Assembly (NCBI GenBank): GCA_965644265.1
Contig: OZ286473.1
Span: forward strand, 85,746,001 to 85,810,000
DNA from: Glycera tridactyla
Taxonomy: Eukaryota
Direction: 5' to 3'
Length of the DNA stretch: 64,000 nt
The notes below the pieces were generated by a model, which was not told the DNA's origin, did no database searches, and saw only the letters and a list, made by a program, of their open reading frames with translations. Shown here in pieces: positions 20,601 to 64,000 of the stretch. Position 1 is the first letter of the stretch, and every line of letters begins with the position of its first letter. The position numbers and the translations under genes were made by a program.

Positions 20601-22237
20601 TCGCTAAAAACAAGAAGCCTTCTATATGGATACTCCCTGGAGCTTGGAGGTATGGTCTGCTTGAGTGACAGATGACCTTCAGGTGACCTTCAAGTTCAAG
20701 GTCAGGTGTGATGAGAGCACCACCCCATAGGAGATAACCCAGTGAATTCTTTCAATAGACTCCATCCCTGTCGAAAATCTTTCAATGATGTTGTTTATAT
20801 TCTACCTGCCAAGTTTAGTTGTCTCATTGAAATGGTGCATGGAACGAAATGGTACTTATGACCTTTGAATTACTAATTCTTATGACCTTTGAATTACTAA
20901 TTACCAATTCTGAGAGCCAAGGATGAAATCATACTTAGTCGTATCCGCCCAGCTACCAAGTGCGTAACTGGTGAAGGGTTATGATTTACGGGGTGGCACA
21001 GGGACTTCCATGAAAGTGGTTGGTTAGGTAATTGGGTTGAATAGCATACATTAACCCGGGTGATCACCATTATGTATGCCATGTGATACTAAATGGGGTG
21101 GAAAGTGTTATGATTTGATAGTGATTTGCATTAGAGGGATGTAACAACAGTGAAGGACATCTGTTGTAATGTAAGTTAACTGCATTTCCTGTTTTGTACT
21201 TCCTGTCAACATGGCCGGCACACAAGAGTCACGTGCAAACTTTCTTCTGTCATCCTGTTCCCACTGCCGACTTAAAATAGGACGCAAACTCATTCGTCTA
21301 TGAATATTGACACAACTCTGCCANNNNNNNNNNNNNNNNNNNNNNNNNNNNNNNNNNNNNNNNNNNNNNNNNNNNNNNNNNNNNNNNNNNNNNNNNNNNN
21401 NNNNNNNNNNNNNNNNNNNNNNNNNNNNNNNNNNNNNNNNNNNNNNNNNNNNNNNNNNNNNNNNGCGTAAGTGGGTGTNNNNNNNNNNNNNNNNNNNNNN
21501 NNNNNNNNNNNNNNNNNNNNNNNNNNNNNNNNNNNNNNNNNNNNNNNNNNNNNNNNNNNNNNNNNNNNNNNNNNNNNNNNNNNNNNNNNNNNNNNNNNNN
21601 NNNNNNNNNNNNNGCCTGTGTGAAGGTTTATGCATACACACAGAATAAGTCCTTATGACCATAGTTGACAGGAGAAACATCACTTATGGGAGAGACTCAT
21701 GTTACAGAACATCGAGGGGTATATCCCGGAATTCACAAGGCACAAAAGCCAGCTAATCAGTCACTCTTCACTCTGAACATAGCCTTGAGCACCATGACCT
21801 CAAATATTTTACATGACCTTGGTTTTTTATCTTTATCACAGATCATGCCTGATTTGACCTTCTGAATGTCACGGTCAAGGGTAGTGCCCCATAGATAGTT
21901 TTGATACTGAGACCTGTCAACGGTCAAAGAATACAATAACAGTGTCAATCCATACACATCCCACACCAAAGAAATGAATTTAATGATGTCGATCAAAGTC
22001 TTAACAAATGACATGTGGAGTTTTGTTTGGCAGGGTTTGGCTTCATGTTGCGGTGCTAAGATGGCAAGAGGAGACATTTCCGCACAATGCCCATTTCTTC
22101 GAAGACTGAGAAAACCCATCGGAAATAAGGACAGGTGCTTCCACTTGATACAGTTTCCATGGCAACCAGAGGCATCCGTTCTTCATTCTAATGCAACTCG
22201 TTACATGTGCCCTGGCCACATCTCTGACAAACTTTAC

Positions 22238-22463: not shown

Positions 22464-22694
22464 CTAGGAGCGAGTCGACCCACTTTGATACGCGCTCTCA
22501 ATTGATGACCCCGAATTACGCCTTGACGTCGTGGAGGACGTCGTTGTATACTGGTGACTGACCAATGAGGAGCTGGTGAACAATTTGTACCAGCCAATCA
22601 CAATGTTTGAGAGATCCAAGTCATCCAATAGGATTTGAGCAACTCCCATGAATACCTTACGATCCATTCTTCCATAGTCTCCCCATACGGTGAC
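22464..22694 (-). CDS. RIMS: RIM terminal coding exon (VTVWGDYGRMDRKVFMGVAQILLDDLDLSNIVIGWYKLF...SAYQSGSTRS*)
   Basis: TTTTGTAG acceptor; 231 nt including TAG at 22464-22466. Matches the RIM C2B end and C-terminus. Confidence 0.98.
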   Translation of the reverse strand, partial: VTVWGDYGRMDRKVFMGVAQILLDDLDLSNIVIGWYKLFTSSSLVSHQYTTTSSTTSRRNSGSSIESAYQSGSTRS

Positions 22695-22879
22695 CTACAA
22701 AATAAGACATTCACCTATTAACTGAAAAAAGGACATCTATTCATTTATCTATTCATTCATTTATTGACCATCCTTCATAGGAGCACATCATATCTGATGG
22801 CTATCGACAGTGTGCCCTAACAATCATAGAATGGTACATCCGAAGGGTGAGCTTGTGCATAAATACAAAACTGCAAGTA

Positions 22880-23037
22880 CAGTGAAACCTCTTTGAGAGA
22901 CTGCCCTCTTTTGAGAGACTGCTTCATCAGTTCTTCTCTATTTGGCACAGTCAAATATACCTCCAATGAGACCACCTCTCTCTTGAGCCCACTTGTGGTC
23001 GGCAGTTTGGGCAGGTCTCCTGAGAGAGGTTTTACTG
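22880..23037. mobile_element. Tc1/mariner-type MITE (TA|CAGTGAAACCTCT...AGAGGTTTTACTG|TA)
   Basis: Terminal inverted repeats with flanking TA; internally similar to 61251-61427 and 45501-45645. Confidence 0.88.
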
Positions 23038-24069
23038 TACTGCCTTATGTCTCTCTAACAGTGAAAACCAGAATTATTTCTCTGGTTGCAATATGGAGCT
23101 AAACATTTTAATTCACCTGGAAAGAGATGTTATCACATGGATGTGCCATTTTCAGTGAAGTACATGTATCAGGTGTTGAGTATTGCGTGTGACACTTCAC
23201 AGCTGGATGAGGACTACTTTTTGATGATTTCTCCCCTGATCCATGTGATACAAGGAATAAATGCACAAATGGCACGCATGTGCGCCGCTAATTCATCCAA
23301 GCAGCTAAATCTAGCAAGCATAATCGTTTGCTCCAAGCATTCTCAAGTTATTGCAGTAACAAGGTCATGACCTGGGAGATGGAGATCAAGGTCACTTGTC
23401 ATTTGATAGGCTTCTTTTGCTTTCAATGGTGCATATATGGTGTAAATCTAGCGAATGTTGCTCCAAGCATTCTCATGTTATTGGAGTAACAAAGTATTTT
23501 TAATGTCAAGGTCATGACCTTGAAGGTGAAGGATGAGGTCAACCACATTTGATGGGATCATCCCCATTCATTGGTACATATCTGGCAGAAATTTGATGGA
23601 TGTAGCTCGAAGTTTTCAAAGTCAAGGTCATGACCTTCAAAATGAAGGTCAAGGTCACAGGCATTTGATAGGCTCTTTCTGCCCCTGCCATCGCTCCTCT
23701 CACTGTCCTAGCCCCCCCCCCCCCCCTCCCCCCAGCCCAGGTGCAATCAATTCCGCTGCAACTTCCACCGCCTCACCCCCACCCCAACCATTCCCCCCCC
23801 CCATCCCATGGCCACTCGCTGCTTCCCCCACCCCCTGCCCTGCCCTCCACAATTTAATTGAGAGATCAGACAGCTCTGCTGATATGTGAAAGGATTCCAC
23901 TTGGTGCAAAGACAGTTATGTAACCGAGGACGAAATGTAACAAGGCTCCATTCATAGGACCGGCAGTGTCATTACATAACAGCCTCGGTAATAGACATCT
24001 TATACTCCACTCTTCCCTATTCTGCTGGTAGAAAGTTGCTTTAAAATTTAGGATTCCAGGCTGAATAAC

Positions 24070-24295
24070 TCATCTTCCATGGAAGTTATTGGAACAATAT
24101 TGATACCCGACATTCTGCCGCTCATGATCTTTATGATTGTTTACAGAGAAGTGGCTCAAAGAAAAACTTTAACCAAAAACTTTAACCAGGAAGTTTACGC
24201 CACACGGCCAAACGGCCACACGGCCGGACGGCCTGACAGACGGAACCTGCGCCATTATATAGACACGCATTTTGCTCCGCATGCGTGCCAAAAAG
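24070..24295 (+). mobile_element. HINE-like element 3' end
   Basis: CGGCC/GACGG-type microsatellite, then stem-loop ACGCAT(24265-70)...ATGCGT(24281-86), then an A-run. TGACCTT/AAGGTCA-rich related sequence at 23360-23670 and 20670-20900. Confidence 0.4.
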
Positions 24296-24462
24296 TAAGA
24301 CTATATGACCGTGAGGTAAAAATGCAATAGCAAACTCGGTATGAATTCACACCTTGTTTGGTATTGCGTTTTTACTTCACGGCCATACAGTCTGCTATAA
24401 TAACATTGCAACTTACAATTTGGTTTGATTGGGAAATGTCATTCACAAGAAAGCATCTTTAC

Positions 24463-24602
24463 CTGGAGAATCTTTCCTACATATGACTCCGTGAAGTACA
24501 GTTGTTGTTGATAGAGGGGATCCAATGTTCGACGTACTATCGTCGTCTTCTGTTTCTCCACACAGTTCTTCCCCTCCATTAGATACACCTTCACATATGG
24601 GG
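24463..24602 (-). CDS. RIMS: RIM C2B exon (APYVKVYLMEGKNCVEKQKTTIVRRTLDPLYQQQLYFTESYVGKILQ)
   Basis: TATTTCAG acceptor and CAG|GTAAAG donor; 140 nt, phase 1-0. K-x-K is retained at the polybasic PIP2-binding strand (KKKT in vertebrates). Confidence 0.98.
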
Positions 24603-24716
24603 CTGAAATACAAACAATACTCTTAACTACTACACCTAGATTATTCTTGATTGCACTTTCGATTCCTTCACTGGTCAGCGTAGGCAATGTTCTAGAAACA
24701 GATGGTTACCTGGAGA

Positions 24717-24879
24717 TTTGTTTGTTTTGTTTGTTTGAGGTTTAACGGCATGTATCAACCCTAGGGTTGAGTATGCCATGTGTTCCTGGTTAATGGAAGC
24801 TAGATATTCTCTCCCTTGCAGACATCACTCACAAACCCTGAACACAAGATGATGGGGAACCTGATAGGTTGTCGAGTGG
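24717..24879 (-). mobile_element. SINE-like family A fragment
   Basis: High similarity to 4024-4218 with a TTTG tail. Confidence 0.8.
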
Positions 24880-25267
24880 TTACCATGGAGATGGATGATC
24901 ACATCACTCCCTAGTGTGACTGCCCAACTTGAGGCACTTATATGAGCAACATGAGGCCACACAGTGGCAACTTTTTAACAGGGTGATTTAAAATAGGAGA
25001 ATGGAACATATCTTGTATCTCTATCAAGACCATCTCTCTATAAAGGCCACCCCGAGCTGCGATTGTACCGTGCCACACCTACCTGATCCACAGCTGCTTA
25101 CAAGCGGCATCACATGTTATGTACAATATTCTAAAGCACAGACATGACTTGATTGGTCCACTGGGATATTCCAATTACATCCTATACTACTAGATATTCA
25201 AATCATATCCCATTGTACTAGACTGAAATAAAGATGAGAGTTGCATGGCAGATAAGTGAATACTTAC

Positions 25268-25485
25268 CGGGTAATAATTTGGCGCCTGGTTTAGCCATAA
25301 GTCCTCGGGCTCGTATCACCTCGACCTCCAAATGACCTTTACGATCAAATAGGCCAAGCTGTATTTCACCCATACAGGGAGAACCTAGCACTTGTCGACC
25401 CACAAGTTGGGCGGGGCCCAGGCCCTCGATAAAATCTCCAAACTGGCCCTCTGGCCCCAGACGCATCCCCGAAGGCAGCCACATC
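25268..25485 (-). CDS. RIMS: RIM exon, start of C2B (MWLPSGMRLGPEGQFGDFIEGLGPAQLVGRQ...EVIRARGLMAKPGAKLLP)
   Basis: TTTGCAG acceptor and G|GTAAGT donor; 218 nt, phase 2-1. Highly conserved RIM sequence. Confidence 0.98.
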
Positions 25486-44738: not shown

Positions 44739-44764
44739 CTGCAAAGAAACATCGAGTACTGACT

Positions 44765-45805
44765 TGTTTTCATGGAAAGAAACATTGTATGGTGGGTGTT
44801 TCAGTTGTAGTAACTTGATTTCATGAACAGGAACATTGTATGGTGGTTGTTTCAGTTGTAGTGACTTGATTTCATCAACAGGGGCACCGTATGGTGGGTA
44901 TTTCACTTGTAGTGATTTGATTTCATCGACAGGAACATCGTATGGTGGGTGTTTCACTTGTAGTGACTTGATTTCATCAACAGGGGCACCGTATGGTGGG
45001 TATTTCACTTGTAGTGATTTGATTTCATCGACAGGAACATCGTATGGTGGGTGTTTCACTTGTAGTGACTTGATTTCATGAACAGGAACATTGTGTGGTG
45101 GGTGTTTCAGTTAATAGTAACTTGATTTCATCAACAGGAACATTGTATGATGGGTGTTTCAATTAATAGTAACTTGATTTCATGAACAGGAACATTGTAT
45201 GGTGGGTGTTTCAGTTGTAGTGACTTGATTTCATGAACAGGAATATTGTATGGTGGGTGTTTCAGTTAATAGTAACTTGATTTCATGAACAGAAACATTG
45301 TATAGTGGGTGTTTCACTTGTAGTGACTTGCTTTCATGAAGAGGAACCTTGTGTGGTGGGTGTTTCAGTTGTATCAACTTGTCTTCATGAACAGGAACAT
45401 TGTGTGGTGGGTGTTTCAGTTGTATCAACTTGTTTTTATGAACAGGAACATTGTATGGTGGGTGTTTCTGATGTAGTGACTTGTTTTCATGAACAGGAAC
45501 GCCAACTGAAAGTGGTCTCTCAAGACAGGTGGTCTCCCATTGGAGGTGTATTTGACTATGTCAAATAGCGAAGAGCCGATAAAGAGTGGTCTCCCATTAG
45601 AGGTTGGTCTCCCAAAAGAGGGGTCTCCCAAGACAGGTGTCACTGTAGTAACTTGATTTCATGAACAGGAATATTGTATGGTGGTTGTTTCACTTGTAGT
45701 GACATGTTTTCATAAACAGGAACATTGTGTGATAGGTGTTTCAGTTGTAGTAACTTGTTTTCATGAACAGGAACACCGTATGGTGGGAGTTTCTGATGTA
45801 GTGAC
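44765..45805. repeat. 51-bp minisatellite (GTAGTGACTTGATTTCAT.AACAGGAACATTGTATGGTGGGTGTTTCA.TT), interrupted by a MITE
   Basis: 17-aa periodicity in ORFs 44529-45059 and 44836-45081; visible units. Confidence 0.93.
45501..45645. mobile_element. Truncated MITE, inverted relative to 61251-61427
   Basis: Its reverse complement closely matches the 61251 copy. It ends CAGGTGTCACTG|TA. Confidence 0.85.
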
Positions 45806-46314
45806 ATACTTTCATCCATACGACCCAGTTAGTAGCAACCATTCCACAAGAATCAAAACTGAATCTGAATCTGATTTCAACAAAACCATTTTCATAGTTC
45901 TAAACATGAATCGACACTATCATGCAACCTCAATAGATTGCTCATTTTCTTTCATGATGTACGAGAGGAGACATTCAGCTTCAAGATTTATTCTCTGAGG
46001 TATTTCATTTACATATGTGGTGGTGCGGGGACATGGAGTTATATCTAACTTTTTGAGAAGGTGAGAAGCGAGTCCATTGGAAATCCCATTACATGGGTAA
46101 TAATCAAAGAAAAGAGCTGAAGATCACGCAGCTGAATAAAATTGGAGTTTGTGACTGAAGTTCCCCCAAATATTGAGATGTATCAGCAAGAAATTAGCTC
46201 AAAATGATTCTCCAGTCTGTGACACTTATCCACACTTACATTTTGAATATCGAAGTATGCGATGGACTAGATTAATACAATAAAGGACATGTGAAACATA
46301 TGGGAAATACTTAC

Positions 46315-49380: not shown

Positions 49381-49546
49381 CTCCCCAACATATTCGCCGC
49401 TACCGATACGGTCGTAGTCATACACCGTCACTTCAAGAGCACGACTCTGAATATCAGAACGTTTCATCGGCGAATAAATGAACGTCTGGTTCCACTTGGG
49501 CTCCAAAGATCCCGCCACTGTTTTTGTTCGCCGTTTACTCTTCTCA
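49381..49546 (-). CDS. RIMS: RIM C2A exon 2 (SEKSKRRTKTVAGSLEPKWNQTFIYSP...VYDYDRIGSGEYVGE)
   Basis: TTGCAG acceptor and GAG|GTAGGT donor; 166 nt, phase 2-0. LEPKWNQTFIYSP matches RIM C2A. Confidence 0.97.
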
Positions 49547-49914
49547 CTGCAAGTGAAATAAATCAATCAATCAACGGATACTACAAGCCTCGTGAAGGGT
49601 AAAGTATTAAGAGTGTTTCTGAACATTTCATACAGAAGCTCTCAATTGTCCTCAAATCCCATTATCTCTCTAGATCCACAAAAGAGAGGAACGATAACAA
49701 AAACTCCCACGACATTTGCTCAGTTTGTAATCCGGTATGGCAAGAGCTCCTTGTGCATTATTTCTTGTGTTCCAATTGTGCAACTTATTAATAGGCATAC
49801 ATTATTCACTCATGTAAGGATGGAACTTAAATTTGGATAGCATTTTGGGTCACATTTTGGATAGCATTGTAGCTAAGGTCCTACTGTATTGTTATCTGTG
49901 GCAATATGACATAC

Positions 49915-50045
49915 CTGCGGTCGGGCAGAAGATAGAGTTTGCAGTAAGGATTGCGCGTCTGACCGTTATCCCGAGGAGGAAGATCAACCGCGCTGATCAC
50001 AGTTACAATCAACTGATAGCTGGGTCCATCATAGTACATCTTCAC
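49915..50045 (-). CDS. RIMS: RIM C2A exon 1 (VKMYYDGPSYQLIVTVISAVDLPPRDNGQTRNPYCKLYLLPDR)
   Basis: TTTACAG acceptor and AG|GTATGT donor; 131 nt, phase 0-2. Classic RIM C2A N-terminal strands. Confidence 0.97.
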
Positions 50046-51092: not shown

Positions 51093-51253
51093 CTGTAGTT
51101 TCCCACAGAACTGTGGGGAATGTGGCCGAATTCGCGTCATCCCCGGCGAGCCAGGCGACGTTATCGTCACGCTAGGACGCTTCAACCGACCAACGTCGGT
51201 TCCCCGCGTCTGGTGACGGTAACCACCAATACCCATCATCCGTTTCTCGCCCG
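51093..51253 (-). CDS. RIMS: RIM exon, linker before C2A (GEKRMM...RPSVTITSPGSPGMTRIRPHSPQFCGKLQ)
   Basis: TTTCGTTGTTTCAG acceptor and CAG|GTAGGC donor; 161 nt, phase 1-0. Resembles vertebrate RPSISVTSPMSP...QFLSGQL. Too short for the ORF track. Confidence 0.93.
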
Positions 51254-53499: not shown

Positions 53500-54880
53500 A
53501 GGTGCATCCATTGGCTGTTAATAAGGAGAGGCAATTGCTGGTGACAATGGAATAGTAATCTTGATTGGGCAATTCCTAATTGTTAATACTGTTATTTTCA
53601 AACAATTCAAGTCACACTCTCCACCATGACTATGCATCCACCACTTGACAAACTCATTCATATCATCAGTCAATTGACATTCCAAGCATGAGAAGGCATC
53701 AATCATTGGTTATTAGTAATACAAGCAAGAGAGGGGATTCCTGATTGGCTGTTGTTACTTATGGCGAATAAGACAGATGCATTCATTGGCTGACTGTTAC
53801 GGATGGTGGATAAGACAGATGCATTCATTGGCTGATTGTTACAGATGGTGGATAAGACAGATGCATTCATTGGCCGATTGTCACTCACCGGTGCATTCAT
53901 TGGCTGATTGTCATTGATGGGGATAAGAGAGAAACTTTCATTGGCTGGTTGTTACTGATGGTGTATGAGACAGATGCATACATTGGGTGATTGTTACTGA
54001 TGGTGGATAAGACAGATGCATTCATTGGCTGATTGTCACTGATGGGGATAAGACAGATACTTCCATTGGCTGATTGTTACTAATGATTGGAAAGACAGGC
54101 CCATGGATTGGCTGATTGATACTTATGGTGTATAAGACAGATGCATTCATTGGCTGATTGTCACTGATGGGATAAGACAGATACTTCCATTGGCTGATTG
54201 TTACTGATGATTGGAAAGACAGGCCCATGGATTGGCTGATTGATACTTATGGTGTATAAGACAGATGCATCCATTGACTGATTGTTACTGATGGTGGAAA
54301 AGCCAGATGCATCCATCGGCTGATTGTTACTGATGATGGGAAAAAACAGGCCCATGGATTGGCTGATTGATACTTATGGTGTATAAGACAGACGCATCCA
54401 TTGGCTGATGGTTACTGGTGGAGAATAAAACAGGTGCATCCATTGGTTGTTAATATGGAGAGAGGTAATTGGCCAAAGGTATTGCTGACTACAAAATGGC
54501 AATGGTGATTGGGCAATCCATAATTGTTAATACTGTTATTGTCAAGAATTTGTCAAGTCATGCTCTCCAAAATGCCCGCCACGACTACATATTCACAACT
54601 TGACAGACTTTAAATATCTGTATCATTAGTCATTGCTCACTCCAAGCTTGAGAAAGCGTCAATCAATGGTCATTAATAATACGAGCAAGAGGAGGGATTT
54701 GCCATCGGTTGATTGTTACTGATGGTGAATAATACAGGCACACCCATTGGATGTTAATAAGAAGGGAGGCAATTGGCCATAGGTGTAGGTGACTACAAAA
54801 GCAATGGTGATTGGGCAATTCCCCAATTGTTAATATTGGTATTGTCAAGCATTTCAAGTTGCACTCTCTTAACTGCATGG
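53500..54880. repeat. Composite repeat: 42-bp ATTGGCTGATTG-containing array (53700-54450) within ~230-bp diverged duplicated flanks
   Basis: Unit CATTGGCTGATTGTTACTGATGGTGGATAAGACAGATGCATT; the flank block recurs at ~53500, ~54430 and ~54740. Confidence 0.88.
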
Positions 54881-57010: not shown

Positions 57011-57383
57011 CCATCATTCAAACCTCAACAGAATATCAAAGCTCTTCTCAGTCCCGAGAAGACCTCAGTGGAATGTCTAAGGTCTTCATGGTTACACTAA
57101 TAGAACATAGAGGGAATGTCCATTGTTTTCATGGTCCCACTAAAACCTCGATAGAATGTCCAAGGTCTTCTAGGGCCCCACTGAAACCTTAATGGAATGT
57201 CCCAAGGTTTCCATGGTCCCATTGGAACCTCAAGGGAATATCTAATTTCTTCATGGTCCCACAAAAATGTCAATGGAATGTCTAAGGTCTTTGTGATGAG
57301 ACGACCATCAAGGGAATATCCAAGGCTTTCATGGCCCCACTATAACCTCCCTGGAATGTCCAAGGTCCAAGGAATGGTCCACA

Positions 57384-57472: not shown

Positions 57473-57699
57473 AATAATTTTCTTAAATATTTGCACATTT
57501 CAATGCTGTACATAGTTTCATCTATGTCTAAGGTCCTTCTAGCCCCACTGAAACCTCAATGGAATGTCAAAGGCTTTCATGGATCCAAGGTCTTTATGAT
57601 CCAATAGAACAACAGATCTAATAGAACAACAAAGGTATGTCCTTGGTCTCTATGGTCCGGCTAATAGAACAACAAGGGTATGTCCTTGGTCTCTATGGT

Positions 57700-59110
57700 C
57701 CGGCTAACAGAACATCAATGGAATGCCAAGGGTCTTCATGGTCCAACTAATAGAACATCAATGGAATGCCAAGGGTCTTCATGGTCCAACTAATAGAACA
57801 TCAATGGAATGTCCAAGGGTATTCATGGTCCAACTAATAGAACATCAAGGGAATGCCAAGGGTCTTCATGGTCCAACTAATAGAACATCAAGGGAATGCC
57901 AAGGGTCTTCATGGTCCAACTAATAGAACATCAAGGGAATGCCAAGGGTCTTCATGGTCCAACTAATAGAACATCAAGGGAATGCCAAGGGTCTTCATGG
58001 TTCAACTAATAGAACATCAAGGGAATGCCAAGGGTCTTCATGGTCCAACTAATAGAACATCAAGGGAATGCCAAGGGTCTTCATGGTCCAACTAATAGAA
58101 CATCAAGGGAATGCCAAGGGTCTTCATGGTCCAACTAATAGAACATCAAGGGAATGCCAAGGGTCTTCATGGTCCAACTAATAGAACATCAAGGGAATGC
58201 CAAGGGTCTTCATGGTCCAACTAATAGAACATCAAGGGAATGCCAAGGGTCTTCATGGTCCAACTAACAGAACATCAAGGGAATGCCAAGGGTCTTCATG
58301 GTCCAACTAATAGAACATCAAGGGAATGCCAAGGGTCTTCATGGTCCAACTAATAGAACATCAAGGGAATGCCAAGGGTCTTCATGGTCCAACTAATAGA
58401 ACATCAAGGGAATGCCAAGGGTCTTCATGGTCCAACTAATAGAACATCAAGGGAATGCCAAGGGTCTTCATGGTCCAACTAATAGAACATCAAGGGAATG
58501 CCAAGGGTCTCCATGGTCCAACTAATAGAACATCAAGGGAATGCCAAGGGTCTTCATGGTCCAACTAATAGAACATCAAGGGAATGCCAAGGGTCTTCAT
58601 GGTCCAACTAATAGAACATCAAGGGAATGCCAAGGGTCTTCATGGTCCAACTAATAGAACATCAAGGGAATGCCAAGGGTCTTCATGGTCCAACTAATAG
58701 AACATCAAGGGAATGCCAAGGGTCTTCATGGTCCAACTAATAGAACATCAAGGGAATGCCAAGGGTCTTCATGGTCCAACTAATAGAACATCAATGGAAT
58801 GTCCAAGGGTCTTCATGGTCCAACTAATAGAACATCAAGGGAATGCCAAGGGTCTTCATGGTCCAACTAATAGAACATCAAGGGAATGTCCAAGGGTCTT
58901 CATGGTCCAACTAATAGAACATCAAGGGAATGTCCAAGGGTCTTCATGGTCCAACTAATAGAACATCAATGGAATGTCCAAGGGTCTTCATGGTCCAACT
59001 AATAGAACATCAAGGGAATGTCCAAGGGTCTTCATGGTCCAACTAATAGAACATCAAGGGAATGTCCAAGGGTCTTCATGGTTAGACTAATAGAACATCC
59101 AGGGAATGTT
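57700..59110. repeat. 43/44-bp satellite core (AATAGAACATCAAGGGAATGCCAAGGGTCTTCATGGTCCAACT), about 32 units
   Basis: Near-perfect tandem array; period measured 57841 to 57884. Confidence 0.98.
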
Positions 59111-61250
59111 CAAGGTCTTCAAGGTCTGACTAACAGAACATCCAGGGAATATTCAAGGTGTTTATTGTCATATGATCACATCAAGAGAATGTCCAAGATT
59201 TCTCTGGCTCACTTAAACCTCAACAAAATGTCTAAGGTTCCCATGGTTCCACTGAAGTTTGGAATCTGAAAGCCTCATGGATATGTCCAAGTACCGATGC
59301 TTCCACTAAAACCTCAAGGTGAATGGCCAAGGTTTAATTGGAAATGTCCATGGTCTCCACAGTCCTGCTAAAACCTCAACAAAATGTAGGTTTCCATGGC
59401 CCTGCTAAAACCTTGAAGAAATGTCAAAGGTTCCAGAGTCTCACAAAAAGCTCAAGGGAATGTCGGAAGGTCATGGCGATCCAACTAATAGAACATCAAA
59501 GGAATGTCCAAGGTCAAGGCGGTCCGACAAATAGAACATCAAAGGAAGGCCAAGGTCACTGCGGTCCGACTAATAGAACATCAAAGGAATGTCCAAGGTC
59601 AAGGCGGTCCGACTAATAGAACATCAAAGGAATGTCCAAGGTCAAGGCGGTCCGACTAATAGAACATCAAAAGAATGTCCAAGGTCAAGGCGGTCCGACT
59701 AATAGAACATCAAAGGAATGTCCAAGGTCAAGGTGGTCCGACTAATAGAACATCAAGAGAATGTCCAAGGTTTCCACTGTCCCACTGAAACCTCAACAAC
59801 ATGTCCAAGATTTCCATGGTTCCGCTGAAGTCTCAATGGAATGTAAAACCTTGTGGATATGTCCAACTTTCCACGGTTCCGCTAAAATCTCAAGGGAATT
59901 GCCAAGGTCCAGTTGGTCCACTAAAACCTTAAAGAAATGCTCATGCTCTTTGTGGTCACATTGAAATCTCAAGGGAATATTCGAGCTATCCACAGTTCAA
60001 CTAACCACATGGGAATGTCCAACTTTCCGCGAACCCCAAAGGAATGGTTAAGGTTTTGTTGGCTCTACTCAAACCTCATGAGAAAGCTGAGGGTTTCCAT
60101 GGTGCTGGTAAAACCGTAATGATATGTAGGCTTCCATGGCTCTGCTGATACCTAGAGAAAAGGTCCGAAAGTTTCCAGGGTCCCACTAAAAGCTCAAGGG
60201 AATGTCCAAGGTCTTCATGGTCTTACCAAAACCTCACCAGATTTCATGGTCCCATTGAAATTTCAAGGAAATGTCCAAGGTCTTCATGGTCCCAATGAAA
60301 CTTTGAAAAGTTTGAATATAGAAATCAGCAGGCTCTGGCCTCTTAATACACACTACATTGAATGGCGGCAGGTTTTCCATTTGTCTCTAATATAATCCCT
60401 ATGTAAATCATCAGAGAAAAAAAATGACAATCACAAGTTCAAACTGCAAGTCAGGATGATACTCCAAGGATGTCATCTATACATCTAATTCTATACCTGA
60501 CCTCAACTCAGACTGAGGCTAGCACAAGCTTCTCAATATATACTGAGAACTCATCTTATCATGTGATCAAGATCCAAAGACTCGGTAAAAGAGAATCTCG
60601 CATAAAATCACGTAATTTAGGCTCACATTTAAGCGCATAAAATTTGACATATTTGACGTATTTCTAAACCTTCATTTTTAGGAAAAAGTATGTGATAAAG
60701 GAGGAGTAGCACACATGACTGCACATAATGATGATCCATGATGCAATCCTGATTTCCGGCTGCATATCTTTCACAATCACCCATTACAAGTCAGCAAGAG
60801 ATTCAACTCAGTCATCAGGTATGCCAAACGCTAAAATTTTGGTATTGTGATGACGGGTTTCATGTTTCTTTGTTAAAATGTCATTATTCCCTCAAAATCA
60901 ATCATCGAATATATATGTACAGCTAATTTACAAATGTTTGGCATTATCTACCCACTCAAGATTGGGTTCATAGTGCATAGAGATAGATCAGCATGTTATG
61001 GTTGTCACAAGGTCGCATGGTGCGATGGGTATTTTCTCAGATTCAATTCCAAATAGATGCACACAGCACTGCTTATGCCTTCATGCCCTACGCATTTATT
61101 CTGTTATATAAGATGTTGGCTGCTTTATGAGACCATTATGAGCTCAAAAGAAGGGTGGTGTTTATGGATATGGACAACTGTAATCAATTCTGAGAAGATA
61201 GATGAATTGCTCACAGTCCCAGGAGCATATCAAAGGAATTATATGCAGTA

Positions 61251-61427
61251 CAGTGAAACCTGTCTTGGGAGACCCCTCTTTAGGAAGACCATCCTCTAAT
61301 GGGATACCGCTCTTAATCGGTTCTTCTCTATTTGACATAGTCAAATATACCTCCAATGAGAGACCACCTGTCTTGAGAGACCACTTTTTGTTGGTGTTCG
61401 GGCGGTCTCCCTAGACAGGTTTTACTG
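61251..61427. mobile_element. Tc1/mariner-type MITE, followed directly by an older copy (~61430-61605)
   Basis: TA|CAGTGAAACCTGTCT...AGACAGGTTTTACTG|TA with long TIRs. Confidence 0.9.
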
Positions 61428-61885
61428 TATAATGAAACCTGAGGAGAGTTCCCTATCAAGACCACCTTTGATGAAGGACCATTTCCATTGCAGAGAGGCT
61501 CTCTTATTTGACACTGTCAAATATACTCCTGATAAAAGACCACTGATTTTGGAATAATCATTCTTGGTGACATCAAATACAGGTCTCTTGTCTCAGGTAT
61601 CACTGTATTTGATTAGACCTGCAATGAAGGATCCCTCAAAAATCACCTGCAATAGCAGGCACCCTTCCCTCATTCTTGCCTTCCATTCGAAGCCTTTTGA
61701 CCCTTTAATGATGATTACTATGCAACTGGTTATATGTTCTCTGAGATCACTCCATGGCATTATTCACAGTGGTCTTCAATGATACGTTCTGCAGAACAGA
61801 TAAGTTTGTGTTAGTGCAAAGACAGTGAACTGGTTATGTCAACAACTTAAGGTAAAGTTACGTTGACATGCAGCTTTTGACCTAC

Positions 61886-63832
61886 CACAGCGTAGGCGCT
61901 GGAGACCAAAACACAGAAGCCAAAGAGCTCTGGACGGGGGTGAGGTCTTCTTCTTATGGATCAGTAGCGATCTATCACTGCCGTCATAACACTTCATGTC
62001 GTTTGCCATGCTGTAGGATAACGGGGAGGACACACGTCTTCTTCTCTTGAGCCATGACTTTGACCCGGACAAACTTCCATCAGAGGTCATACTGTCATGT
62101 GATGGAGAGTCTTTACTTGATTTATGACGTCGGCTCAACGGTGACGGAGTTACTCTCTCCGATGAAACTTCCTCCTTAGCTCCAGCTATCGCCTCCAGAC
62201 TTAAGAATCCTTCAGTCTCATTCGAGTTGGTCACTCCAGCTAAGTCCCTTGAGCTTGCTGTAAAGCTCACTGATTTTGCTTTGATCTTTCTGAACAAACT
62301 CTTCCTGCCTGGTTTACTATCATTACATCTTGCCAGATCAGAAGCCTCAGATTTTGTCCTTGATCTTGAAAATAATCCACGTTTTTTCATAATTTGTTCA
62401 GTCTTCTTAGGTGCAGAATCATCCTCCCTTGTGGAGTCAAGTTCTACAGTCCTCATGTTAGCAGCACTGGCAATTTCTTTATCTAGGTTTCTTGGTGTGG
62501 ATGTGAAAATACTAGAGGTTGGTTCTGGATTGATGGGGGAAGACGAAAGTGAATCCATGGCAGTTTCTACACCAGAGGAAGGTGACATATTTCCTGCTGC
62601 AGATGATGATGACGTTTCCGACCACTGGACAGGCACATCGGGTTCCCCAATCTCTCCCGCTGACGCAATTGCACGTCCATCAGACCTATCATGTCGGATC
62701 ACCATGGCCAAGCCACAACTGGTACATACAACCCGAGAAGAATTGCAGCTTACTGTCTGAGTCGATTGATCGCACATGGAGATGGATTCCCGCCCGCGTA
62801 CATCTGTGATTCCGGCACGCTGGAGACATTGCTCTTCATTGTTCCTCAAATCAATATCACTGCAATATCCATCATAGATATCAGCTCCTAGCAATGACAG
62901 CGTGTGTGAATTGAGAGCAAATATCTCGTCAAACGAGTAGTCAAAGGATGAAGTTGACGGCAGACTAGAGCGTTCTCTCTCTCCATTCATACTAAGCATC
63001 GGGTCAGTATGAGACCACCGCTCCCCATGTTGACCCGATACTAAACCCTGTTTCGGGGGCGGTCTTATATCCACACTTGGTCTGAGCTGACCATTTGCTG
63101 AGGGACCAAGTTCCTTATCAACATCTTCAACTGCAATTACAACCGGACCCCAACTCCTGGCCTGGAGAACCTCTTCACTATGATTGCGTCGACATTTGGC
63201 CGTAGAATACTCAGATGATCTCAATTCGAGAGAGAGATTTGAGTGGTGTTTCACAGCATTGAAAGTATGTACATCAAAATCTTCATGAATGAAGACACTG
63301 TCATCTTCAGACGATGCTAGGCTCCTGGTTCGACAGTTTGAGTTTGATGCTGACTTGCTCAATGACCTGCTTGCTGATGTCCTCCTCGTCGAGGTCCTGC
63401 CACTGATGTGTGGAGGACCAAGCTCACTCTCATACGATTCCGGGGGATGTACGACCTTCCGAGCTGATACTGGATGACTACCATATCTGGTGTTGCTGGA
63501 TTCTGGTTCATGAGGATTAATCTGCAGTTTGAACCAAGGTGACTCTACAGAGGTTGGTTCTGAAACCCCCGAGATAGATCCATCACTAGTGATCGTGAGA
63601 CTTCGACGAAATGCCTCATCTAAACTTGACTCCGAGCAATTCTCACCGACCTCCTGAGGAACACTGTTATGACTATTTAACATCCAATTAGTGTTAATGT
63701 TACGATACACAGTTTGTGGTTCTATCCACGGTTCCAGCAGCTCGTTCTCTTCTGTCTCATGCACGGGTTCCATATTCCCGATTCCTCTCTGCATCTGCGT
63801 GGGTCTCTTACCAGAACCCCTTCTGTTTCTCC
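61886..63832 (-). CDS. RIMS: Putative giant RIM exon (1947 nt, phase 1-1), Ser/Arg/Glu-rich low-complexity insert; alternatively a first exon starting at ATG 63773 (MEPVHE...)
   Basis: Lies inside the 710-codon ORF 61839-63971. Acceptor ctag|G at 63833/63832 follows T-rich intron-like sequence. Donor TGTG|GTAGGT at 61886/61885 exits in phase 1, matching the phase-1 entry of exon 51253. No recognisable domain. Confidence 0.7.
63812..63832 (-). CDS. RIMS: Putative 21-nt RIM microexon (GRNRRGS), same acceptor as the giant exon
   Basis: ctag|GG AGA AAC AGA AGG GGT TCT G|GTAAGA: near-consensus donor, symmetric phase 1-1, frame-compatible with exon 51253. Confidence 0.5.
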
Positions 63833-64000
63833 CTAGGATTTCATAGATAACAACACAAACTACATGTATCAGAAAAATAACAAGCAGTAAAAAAAGGTGC
63901 TGATGAATGAAAGAAACAAACATAATGAAAATATCACACCTGATAAAAGCTGATGAAAGAAATGATTGCAATAAGTAAATTGGTATTTCAATAGTTCGGA

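Follow-up and report, generated by a model that had tools for sequence, protein, structure and literature searches.

At the release site, RIM proteins connect three partners: calcium channels by way of PDZ, vesicles via the zinc finger, Rab3 and Munc13, and the membrane by means of the C2 domains. The disordered parts of RIM help to drive active-zone condensates. The closest described systems for the locus reported here are the vertebrate RIM1/RIM2 (RIMS1/RIMS2) alpha proteins, members of the same family, in which the linker between PDZ and C2A is short, about 60 residues, and the splicing sites A, B and C are placed elsewhere, in the part from the zinc finger to PDZ and in the part from C2A to C2B. 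Vertebrate RIM is not known to have an exon of about 650 residues at the PDZ-C2A junction, and no description of a long insert or of splicing at this place was found in the literature for any RIM. The present analysis concerns a 64,000-nucleotide (nt) stretch of the genome of Glycera tridactyla (GenBank assembly GCA_965644265.1, contig OZ286473.1, forward-strand positions 85,746,001 to 85,810,000; hereafter the window, numbered from its first letter), which carries a RIM orthologue on the minus strand and, on the same strand, an open reading frame (ORF) of several hundred codons that would lengthen the linker to about 650 residues. An initial annotation, made from the letters alone, had proposed that this frame is one arm of an alternative splice-site switch in RIM, with a 21-nt microexon as the other arm. 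What is most likely new here is a RIM with a giant, near-neutrally evolving and frame-preserved insert between PDZ and C2A.

Two further kinds of described system touch on this locus. RIM genes make N-terminally truncated isoforms from internal promoters, namely the beta and gamma forms of vertebrates (PMC10169678). These isoforms (RIM1 beta, RIM2 beta, RIM2 gamma and RIM3/4 gamma) offer a precedent for reading the ORF as a 5′ exon; however, the known beta forms keep PDZ and the gamma forms consist of C2B alone, and a start between PDZ and C2A with an N-terminus of 650 residues is undescribed. Neural microexons (3–27 nt, dependent on SRRM4/nSR100) resemble the proposed 21-nt exon in its size, in being a multiple of three, in the strong donor and in the location within a synaptic scaffold gene. 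In contrast to SRRM4-type microexons, the one proposed here has no UGC motif near its acceptor and no conservation in a diverged relative; moreover, known microexons are cassette exons, whereas this one would be the short arm of alternative donors 1.9 kb apart.

The host gene was identified through its C2 domains. The segment 49357–49566 of the minus strand found its best matches in the C2A domains of Drosophila Rim (4TS6, E 1.9e-17) and rat RIM2 (2BWQ, E 3.2e-16), with RIM C2A structures outranking Piccolo and the synaptotagmins, and the last coding exon (22467–22694, minus strand) matched RIM1 C2B only (2Q3X and 8Z22, E 8e-21); these matches to solved RIM domains bear out the assignment to RIM made by the initial annotation. 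The confirmed exon that precedes C2A (Table 1) requires one base to complete its first codon. Its end, RPSVTITSPGSPGMTRIRPHSPQFCGKLQ, is what we take to be the conserved stretch just before C2A of vertebrate RIM1, and its motif RPSVTITSPGSPGM...PQF.GKL matches the vertebrate linker directly before C2A, as in rat RIM1. No PDZ-like motif was detected on the minus strand between 50000 and 64000 of the window, which places the PDZ exons beyond the window edge and the ORF between the PDZ side and C2A, in support of the location first suggested for it.

The ORF itself is far beyond chance. The minus-strand frame runs without a stop from the window edge down to the stop codon at 61841–61839, over 719 codons, while the mean open stretch is 17 codons across all six frames of the whole window and the next longest stretch without masked bases (N) has about 210 codons; the chance of 719 stop-free codons is ~1e-18. 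In 2000 shuffles of the ORF region the longest open stretch reached 224 codons, and the remaining five frames across this region contain 21–68 stops each. The openness of the 649-codon long form, as originally claimed, is thereby upheld. The region is single copy within the window and holds no simple repeat. A codon-usage score trained on 523 codons from the confirmed RIM exons of the window placed the ORF ~5 standard deviations closer to exons than intron windows of the same gene, and the frame of the ORF ranked best of the six.

Independent evidence came from the RIM locus of a diverged relative. A search with the short pre-C2A exon led to a single 58-residue protein on a 52-kb ENA contig, which was recognized as the RIM orthologue of this relative. 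Its pre-C2A exon is 88% identical to that of the window over 32 residues (the 3′ 32 codons, RLKRPSVTITSPGSPG...GKLQ) and has a phase-1 acceptor as in the window; C2A and the later exons are 67–93% identical, with 81–93% for the C2A core exons. On the same strand, 2.1 kb upstream of the phase-1 pre-C2A exon, the relative carries an ORF of 812 codons (locus L001, 2793–5228), which appears in gene calls as a stand-alone gene of 746 residues. No PDZ exons were found in the 2.8 kb upstream of this ORF, where the contig ends. At the nucleotide level, no similarity was detected between window 64000–50900 and the matching part of the relative's contig, so that silent sites appear to be saturated. The maintenance, without frameshifts or stops, of a syntenic long ORF in the RIM gene of the relative indicates that the ORF belongs to the RIM locus.

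The selection test was performed pairwise between the ORF of the relative, not that of the window, and a third sequence (L004), a 2.7-kb metagenome scaffold retrieved by a search with the relative's ORF, of which it shares the 3′ 60% together with 660 nt of downstream flank. Over the 403 aligned codons (1209 nt) of the ORF, there were 72 substitutions (6.0%), no stops and four indels, all of them in frame (99, 99, 48 and 3 nt). Over the 660 aligned nt of the flank, there were 65 substitutions (9.8%) and 15 indels, 13 of which were not multiples of three. Thus, no frameshifting indel was observed in the ORF against ~24 expected at the flank rate, and the two substitution rates differed (Fisher p 0.003). 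The rates of synonymous (dS) and non-synonymous (dN) change were 0.071 and 0.060, respectively, giving a dN/dS of 0.84, and the stop codon is kept in both sequences (TAA vs TGA). A strictly kept frame with nearly free residues is the pattern that a translated, disordered region would leave. The comparison with a relative suggested by the initial annotation turned in favor of coding: the relative's ORF lacks stops and frameshifts. It is nearly certain that the RIM locus maintains the ORF as a coding segment, which is lineage-restricted, evolves very fast and is probably an exon of RIM.

The connection of this segment to the rest of RIM was evaluated from the splice sites. On the minus strand, the acceptor at 63832, the proximal donor at 63812, the distal donor at 61886 and the exon starting at 51253 are all exactly where they had been placed, and the phase arithmetic given for them is correct (21 = 7 × 3, 1947 = 649 × 3): each donor leaves one base, hence both products are in frame with exon 51253. 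The sequence around the acceptor reads ...atcctag/GGAGAAACAGAAGGGGTTCTG/gtaagaga... and covers 63832–63812 (slashes mark exon borders; the first exon base is 63832 and the exon begins with GGAGAA), and the distal donor lies in the context ...CTACGCTGTG/gtaggtca... The confirmed donors of the window RIM gene score 4.8–7.7 bits, and donor motifs starting with GTAGG occur in three of its confirmed exons (two GTAGGT, one GTAGGC). Donors of at least 3.5 bits occur here about once per kb, and one of the right phase within the last 60 nt has a chance of ~0.03–0.05. In both species, a phase-1 donor-like site stands just before the stop, at 15 codons in the window and 9 codons in the relative, and each of them phase-matches the phase-1 acceptor of the next RIM exon. 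The relative's site, AAG/GTATAA, is identical in L004 and resembles confirmed donors of the relative (GTATAG, GTAAAT, GTTAGC). Beyond the donors, the frame closes about as fast as expected of an intron (mean 18 codons). Phase-1 acceptor candidates are likewise present near the ORF start in both species (63832 in the window, 2890/2893 in the relative), which adds little because acceptor-like sites are frequent. Taken from these sites, it is likely that the ORF is spliced from 61886 into the C2A-encoding part of the gene.

The encoded protein is rich in Ser (17.6%), Arg (8.3%) and Glu (7.6%), non-repetitive and of near-zero net charge. No Pfam family was detected in the 648- and 719-residue frames of the window or in the 812-residue frame of the relative. 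Similarly, a word-based protein search gave no match to the ORF among proteins of 356–1134 residues, an exhaustive phmmer search of 1.84 billion representative proteins gave none, a feature search of the ESM Atlas returned only sub-threshold, low-complexity look-alikes, and tblastn-confirmed scans of metagenome contigs and viral contigs revealed no relatives of the ORF. AlphaFold2, run on the single sequence with no alignment, predicted no confident fold (mean predicted local distance difference test, pLDDT, of 36), a value that is weak evidence of disorder because it comes from a single sequence; the sole predicted helix with a pLDDT near 60 falls in the exon end, 61887..61958. The segment is probably intrinsically disordered, as this model and the polar and charged, domain-free composition suggest and as had been predicted initially. 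The basic clusters and the hydrophobic, Cys-containing end described at the outset were also found in the ORF (motifs KKRGLFSRSRTKS, SWLKRRRRVSSP and LWLLCFGLQRLRC), and Cys is enriched to the very end of both ORFs, past the proposed donors too.

These clusters recall known membrane-binding segments. MARCKS-type basic effector segments and juxtamembrane Cys clusters bind acidic lipids, are switched by phosphorylation, or are palmitoylated. Lys/Arg clusters with Phe and Ser, as in MARCKS, occur here (RKSLFRKIKAKSVSF) and in the relative (KSKRFSFERLKR), and at the end of both ORFs a hydrophobic, Cys-rich stretch comes after a basic run. The likeness to MARCKS is one of composition, with no alignment or family model behind it, and the clusters are short within a far longer disordered chain.

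Based on these features, we tentatively favor, at somewhat less than an even chance, an internal giant linker exon between PDZ and C2A that is symmetric in frame. Splicing into the 1947-nt exon (phase 1 to phase 1) would come from PDZ-side exons beyond the window, and splicing out of it would run from the donor at 61886 to the conserved pre-C2A exon at 51253, which would result in a disordered, Ser/Arg/Glu-rich linker of ~650 residues from PDZ to C2A. Selection appears to keep the frame open together with a few short basic, hydrophobic and Cys clusters, and not the residue sequence, while the basic-Phe-Ser clusters and the Cys-rich end might serve lipid binding, phosphorylation or palmitoylation next to C2A. 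Inclusion of the exon in RIM mRNA, the choice of splice sites and the disorder of the segment are what we infer. The two ORFs share like motif types in a like order: [KR]NRRGS, then SGVS..WF..NP..GPP (the stretch that forms their best local alignment), then basic-Phe-Ser clusters, and finally a basic run with a hydrophobic, Cys-rich end. The first 20 residues of the pre-C2A exon (its 5′ 20 codons) are equally unalignable between window and relative, so that such divergence is how linker sequence behaves in RIM here.

Several observations weigh against an internal coding exon of this kind. The homology between the two ORFs is marginal, and the link between window and relative therefore rests mainly on position: BLASTP gave an E-value of 0.04 (0.001 without composition adjustment) with 35% identity over 83 columns, the Smith-Waterman score was 70 against 50–54 ± 7 in shuffles (6–8 of 300 reached 70, p ~0.02–0.03), and comparison by hhalign with the relative's two-sequence profile gave no significant match for the window ORF. 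The frame-specific codon bias is weak (−0.045 bits per codon, with the next frame at −0.105), and the codon-usage score of the ORF falls below that of most confirmed exons. A dN/dS near 1 by itself also suits non-coding sequence, only the indel and stop pattern arguing for coding. In L004, the 5′ 870 nt keep the frame but bear no relation to the relative's contig; this scaffold may hence be chimeric, represent a paralogue or reflect a real rearrangement, which leaves the pairwise selection test unaffected. With purines from −10 to −7, the acceptor at 63832 (tcctag) falls short of most confirmed acceptors in strength, and the PDZ exons, and with them the phase of the upstream exon, lie outside both the window and the relative's contig. 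No RNA run containing the ORF stretch was found in a search of public sequencing runs made with the ORF alone, a negative that says little by itself; the one run with part of the stretch (6% of its words) looks like low-coverage DNA. Finally, the ORF frame stays open for 55 codons upstream of the acceptor, up to the window edge. In this T-rich stretch, 63833–63998, T makes up 62% of codon position 2 vs 33% of position 1, and the T share upstream of the other acceptors of the gene is 26–39%, vs 48% here. By simulation, such a stretch would be open with a probability of ~0.03–0.07 and, given that it is open, would show this periodicity with a probability of ~0.008; it also tops the 7 real T-rich open stretches of the window (16 vs 10, 10, 8, 6, 3 and −4). 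This open pattern, with its periodic T at the second codon position, is not expected of an intron end.

The same upstream stretch is what favors reading the ORF as a 5′ exon with its own promoter and start (ATG at 63922, 63794 or 63773, or beyond the window), spliced from 61886 to 51253, whose product would be a RIM without zinc finger and PDZ and with a new N-terminus before C2A and C2B. The frame being open to the window edge, the true 5′ end of the ORF lies outside view; T at codon position 2 is a hydrophobic-codon signature, the acceptor at 63832 is of middling strength, the ATG at 63773 proposed by the initial annotation was indeed found in the sequence and in good context (aatATGg), vertebrate RIM genes provide the precedent of internal promoters, and the phase-1 donors towards the end of the ORF suit it no less than they suit an internal exon. 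In fact, 63833–63998 would encode a hydrophobic, membrane-anchor-like segment followed by RNRRGSGKR, with the first in-frame ATG at 63922, from which a hydrophobic, anchor-like N-terminus and then a basic cluster would be translated. Nevertheless, the relative's ORF has no hydrophobic N-terminal segment, and directly upstream of it stands a T-rich repeat with a chance open hydrophobic frame, so that T-rich non-coding DNA beside the ORF is normal here; the real T-rich open stretches of the window also have a positive excess of T at position 2 over position 1, and only 78 nt upstream of the ATG at 63922 are available within the window for judging a promoter. We know of no RIM isoform that starts between PDZ and C2A. 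A 5′ exon is considered unlikely, though no less probable than when the initial annotation raised it, and its special form, a membrane-anchored RIM isoform without zinc finger and PDZ (anchor at 63922–63834, basic cluster, ~650 disordered residues with basic/Phe/Ser clusters of a lipid-binding type and a Cys-rich end, C2A and C2B), very unlikely. The splice-like sites could also be coincidental if the ORF were an old orphan gene in its own right, nested within a RIM intron and sharing the strand of RIM. Its translation would start at an ATG of its own and finish at the stop at 61839, and its product would be disordered, with basic-Phe-Ser clusters and a Cys-rich tail. The stand-alone gene call in the relative, the unrelated 5′ coding part that in L004 is fused, in frame, to two-thirds of the ORF from its 3′ side, the stop kept in both related sequences and the Cys enrichment to both ORF ends, past the proposed donors, are consistent with such a gene, and an old nested position would likewise be conserved. 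It is made quite improbable by the donor-like sites of matching phase 9–15 codons before the stop in both species (rough joint chance ~0.005–0.02), by the closing of the frame after these donors as soon as intron expectation predicts, by the rarity of same-strand nested genes and by the lack of a homologue outside the RIM position among the 1.84 billion proteins.

The switch envisaged by the initial annotation, in which one acceptor at 63832 would serve either a 21-nt (7-residue) or a 1947-nt (649-residue) exon, fared unevenly. The two donors share phase 1, so that either product continues in frame into exon 51253, the shorter length is divisible by three, and the proximal donor, CTG/GTAAGA, falls within the range of confirmed donors and stands 21 nt from an acceptor-like site, an arrangement (strong donor within 30 nt) with a chance of ~0.9% per site. 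In an open frame, however, donors of the GTAAG, GTAGG and GTGAG types are restricted to phases 0 and 1 because phase 2 makes a stop, so that phase agreement is a 1-in-2 event per site, and this strand of the 64-kb window contains 9 comparable pairs in which a strong donor follows an acceptor-like site by no more than 30 nt, about as chance would produce. The microexon and its proximal donor have no counterpart in the relative: its KNRRGS hexapeptide, at ORF residue 225 and thus 224 codons inside, is a chance-level match (BLASTP E ~10) with no acceptor-like or donor-like site beside it, and ~200 nt of the candidate exon precede the first donor-like site of the relative. The acceptor at 63832 lacks strength, and no TGC occurs in the 40 nt before it (the nearest is ~57 nt upstream). 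The switch is as doubtful as the nested gene. In turn, a non-functional ORF, either a chance or decaying frame or the remnant of a mobile element, would account for the absence of detected homologues and domains, the dN/dS near 1, and the weak frame-specific codon bias, but it has to face the length of the frame, the second long ORF that a diverged relative has at this place and the absence of stops, with in-frame indels only, over 1.2 kb, against 13 frameshifting indels in 660 nt of flank. A transposon or viral ORF was also tried and rejected, in agreement with what the initial annotation would have required of a RIM exon: Pfam revealed no reverse transcriptase, integrase, transposase or capsid signature, no relatives were found in viral contigs or among the 1.84 billion proteins, and the ORF is single copy in the window. 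The non-functional reading is close to refuted. The internal linker exon remains the reading that we prefer.

Table 1. Features of the Glycera tridactyla window and of its candidate RIM linker exon (window coordinates; bit scores are those of donor sites).
Feature	Position	Strand	Remarks
Whole open frame	61842..63998	-	719 codons; 5′ side reaches the window edge
T-rich stretch (48% T)	63833..63998	-	Open in the ORF frame; intron 3′ end or coding sequence
Candidate giant exon	61886..63832	-	1947 nt = 649 × 3 codons, phase 1 at both ends, Ser/Arg/Glu-rich, domain-free
Proposed microexon, 21 nt	63812..63832	-	TAG acceptor of middling pyrimidine content; donor CTG/GTAAGA, 5.1 bits
Third donor-like site TCG/GTGAGA	63641..63649 (last exon base 63647)	-	Phase 1, 3.3 bits; would yield a 186-nt exon
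Two basic clusters with Phe and Ser (KKRGLFSRSRTKS, RKSLFRKIKAKSVSF)	62262..62387	-	Similar to the relative's cluster KSKRFSFERLKRTLRRKSSVF
Exon end: basic run (HKKK), then hydrophobic Cys-containing segment ALWLLCFGLQRLRC	61887..61958	-	The relative's ORF end is RRRKKGLHCCLLGICAPLF
Distal donor GTG/GTAGGT	61880..61888 (last exon base 61886)	-	Phase 1, 3.6 bits
Pre-C2A linker exon, confirmed	51093..51253	-	Phase-1 acceptor (tttcag/), phase-0 donor
RIM C2A domain exons	49381..50045 (50045-49915 and 49546-49381)	-	Match to solved RIM C2A domains
RIM C2B domain exons	22467..25485 (checked: 25485-25268, 22694-22467)	-	Match to solved RIM C2B domains

Further observations were made on the sequences that surround these features. 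When the public run was assembled on 61000–64000, one 262-nt contig was obtained within the ORF (62307–62568), 97% identical and with seven differences, no gaps and no stops, in addition to a piece upstream of the acceptor; six listed differences amount to two synonymous and three non-synonymous codon changes, too few for a selection test. The run looks like low-coverage genomic DNA, either of this species or of a sister species. The start of exon 51253, as it would stand in a spliced transcript, gave no match when metagenome contigs were scanned for exact copies. A short high-copy repeat at 61249–61430 reached a summed depth of 20,000–57,000 over many diverged copies, against a depth of 0–2 in the adjoining unique sequence, and is probably similar to a short interspersed nuclear element. 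On the opposite strand of the ORF, an open frame of 177 codons (62227–62760, plus strand) is taken to be a shadow of the codon bias of the coding strand and no gene. In the window there are five masked N runs (340–475, 1313–1445, 2902–3060, 21324–21464 and 21479–21613), of which those within 1–3160 sit among long minisatellites whose units (HPINSDHHHCVIMI...) are open in several frames, hence a spurious open stretch of 496 codons in that part.

Tandem repeats are also present in the RIM introns. Between the ORF and exon 51253, an array of a 43-bp unit spans 57618–59150 (35.5 copies, 97% identity), with further parts at 57020–57367 and 59452–59836, and a 42/125-bp array of ~13 copies occupies 53744–54446. 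A 51-bp (17-codon) minisatellite of 14.5 copies with 87% identity (44756–45500 and 45640–45815) ends 18 nt upstream of the acceptor of the confirmed RIM exon 44738 and is open in the frame of that exon (units like HPPYDVPVDEIKSLQVK). In the relative, a T-rich repeat element occurs twice in the locus (L001 2039–2776 and 8786–9520), one copy standing directly upstream of the long ORF, and contains chance open, hydrophobic-looking frames of up to 80 codons. The C2A exons of the relative lie 17.6 kb past the pre-C2A exon, behind a long terminal repeat (LTR) retrotransposon, so that this intron measures 17.6 kb vs 1 kb in the window; the ORF of the LTR element looks intact (1550 residues with reverse transcriptase, RNase H and integrase; L003 15219–19871, equal to L001 13964–17549). 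The intron positions within C2A differ between the species (49381/46416 in the window vs L003 7965/7153–7049), the window alone having an intron between ...EYVGE and VVIDL... and the relative alone having one after ...DYDR. Positions 1–873 of L004 correspond to the unrelated 5′ part of 184 residues, which passes in frame into the shared 3′ part at a breakpoint equal to L001:3771; its stretch YLSDFHPFS...DGLTYAHAMQY reminded us of NADAR/YbiA-type domains, an assumption for which Pfam gave no match.

If true, two diverged species that both keep a fast-evolving insert of 650–770 residues open between PDZ and C2A would offer a natural experiment on RIM and show how much the length of the linker and additional lipid-binding clusters weigh in the coupling of channels to vesicles. 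The ORF is, moreover, an example of an exon that is near-neutral in its residues and strictly kept in frame. Such exons are missed by homology-based annotation and by protein searches, as illustrated by the 1.84 billion proteins that gave none, while only synteny led to a counterpart. In the case of the anchored isoform, if true, a layout of anchor, linker and two C2 domains, similar to that of the synaptotagmins, would have arisen inside a scaffold gene.

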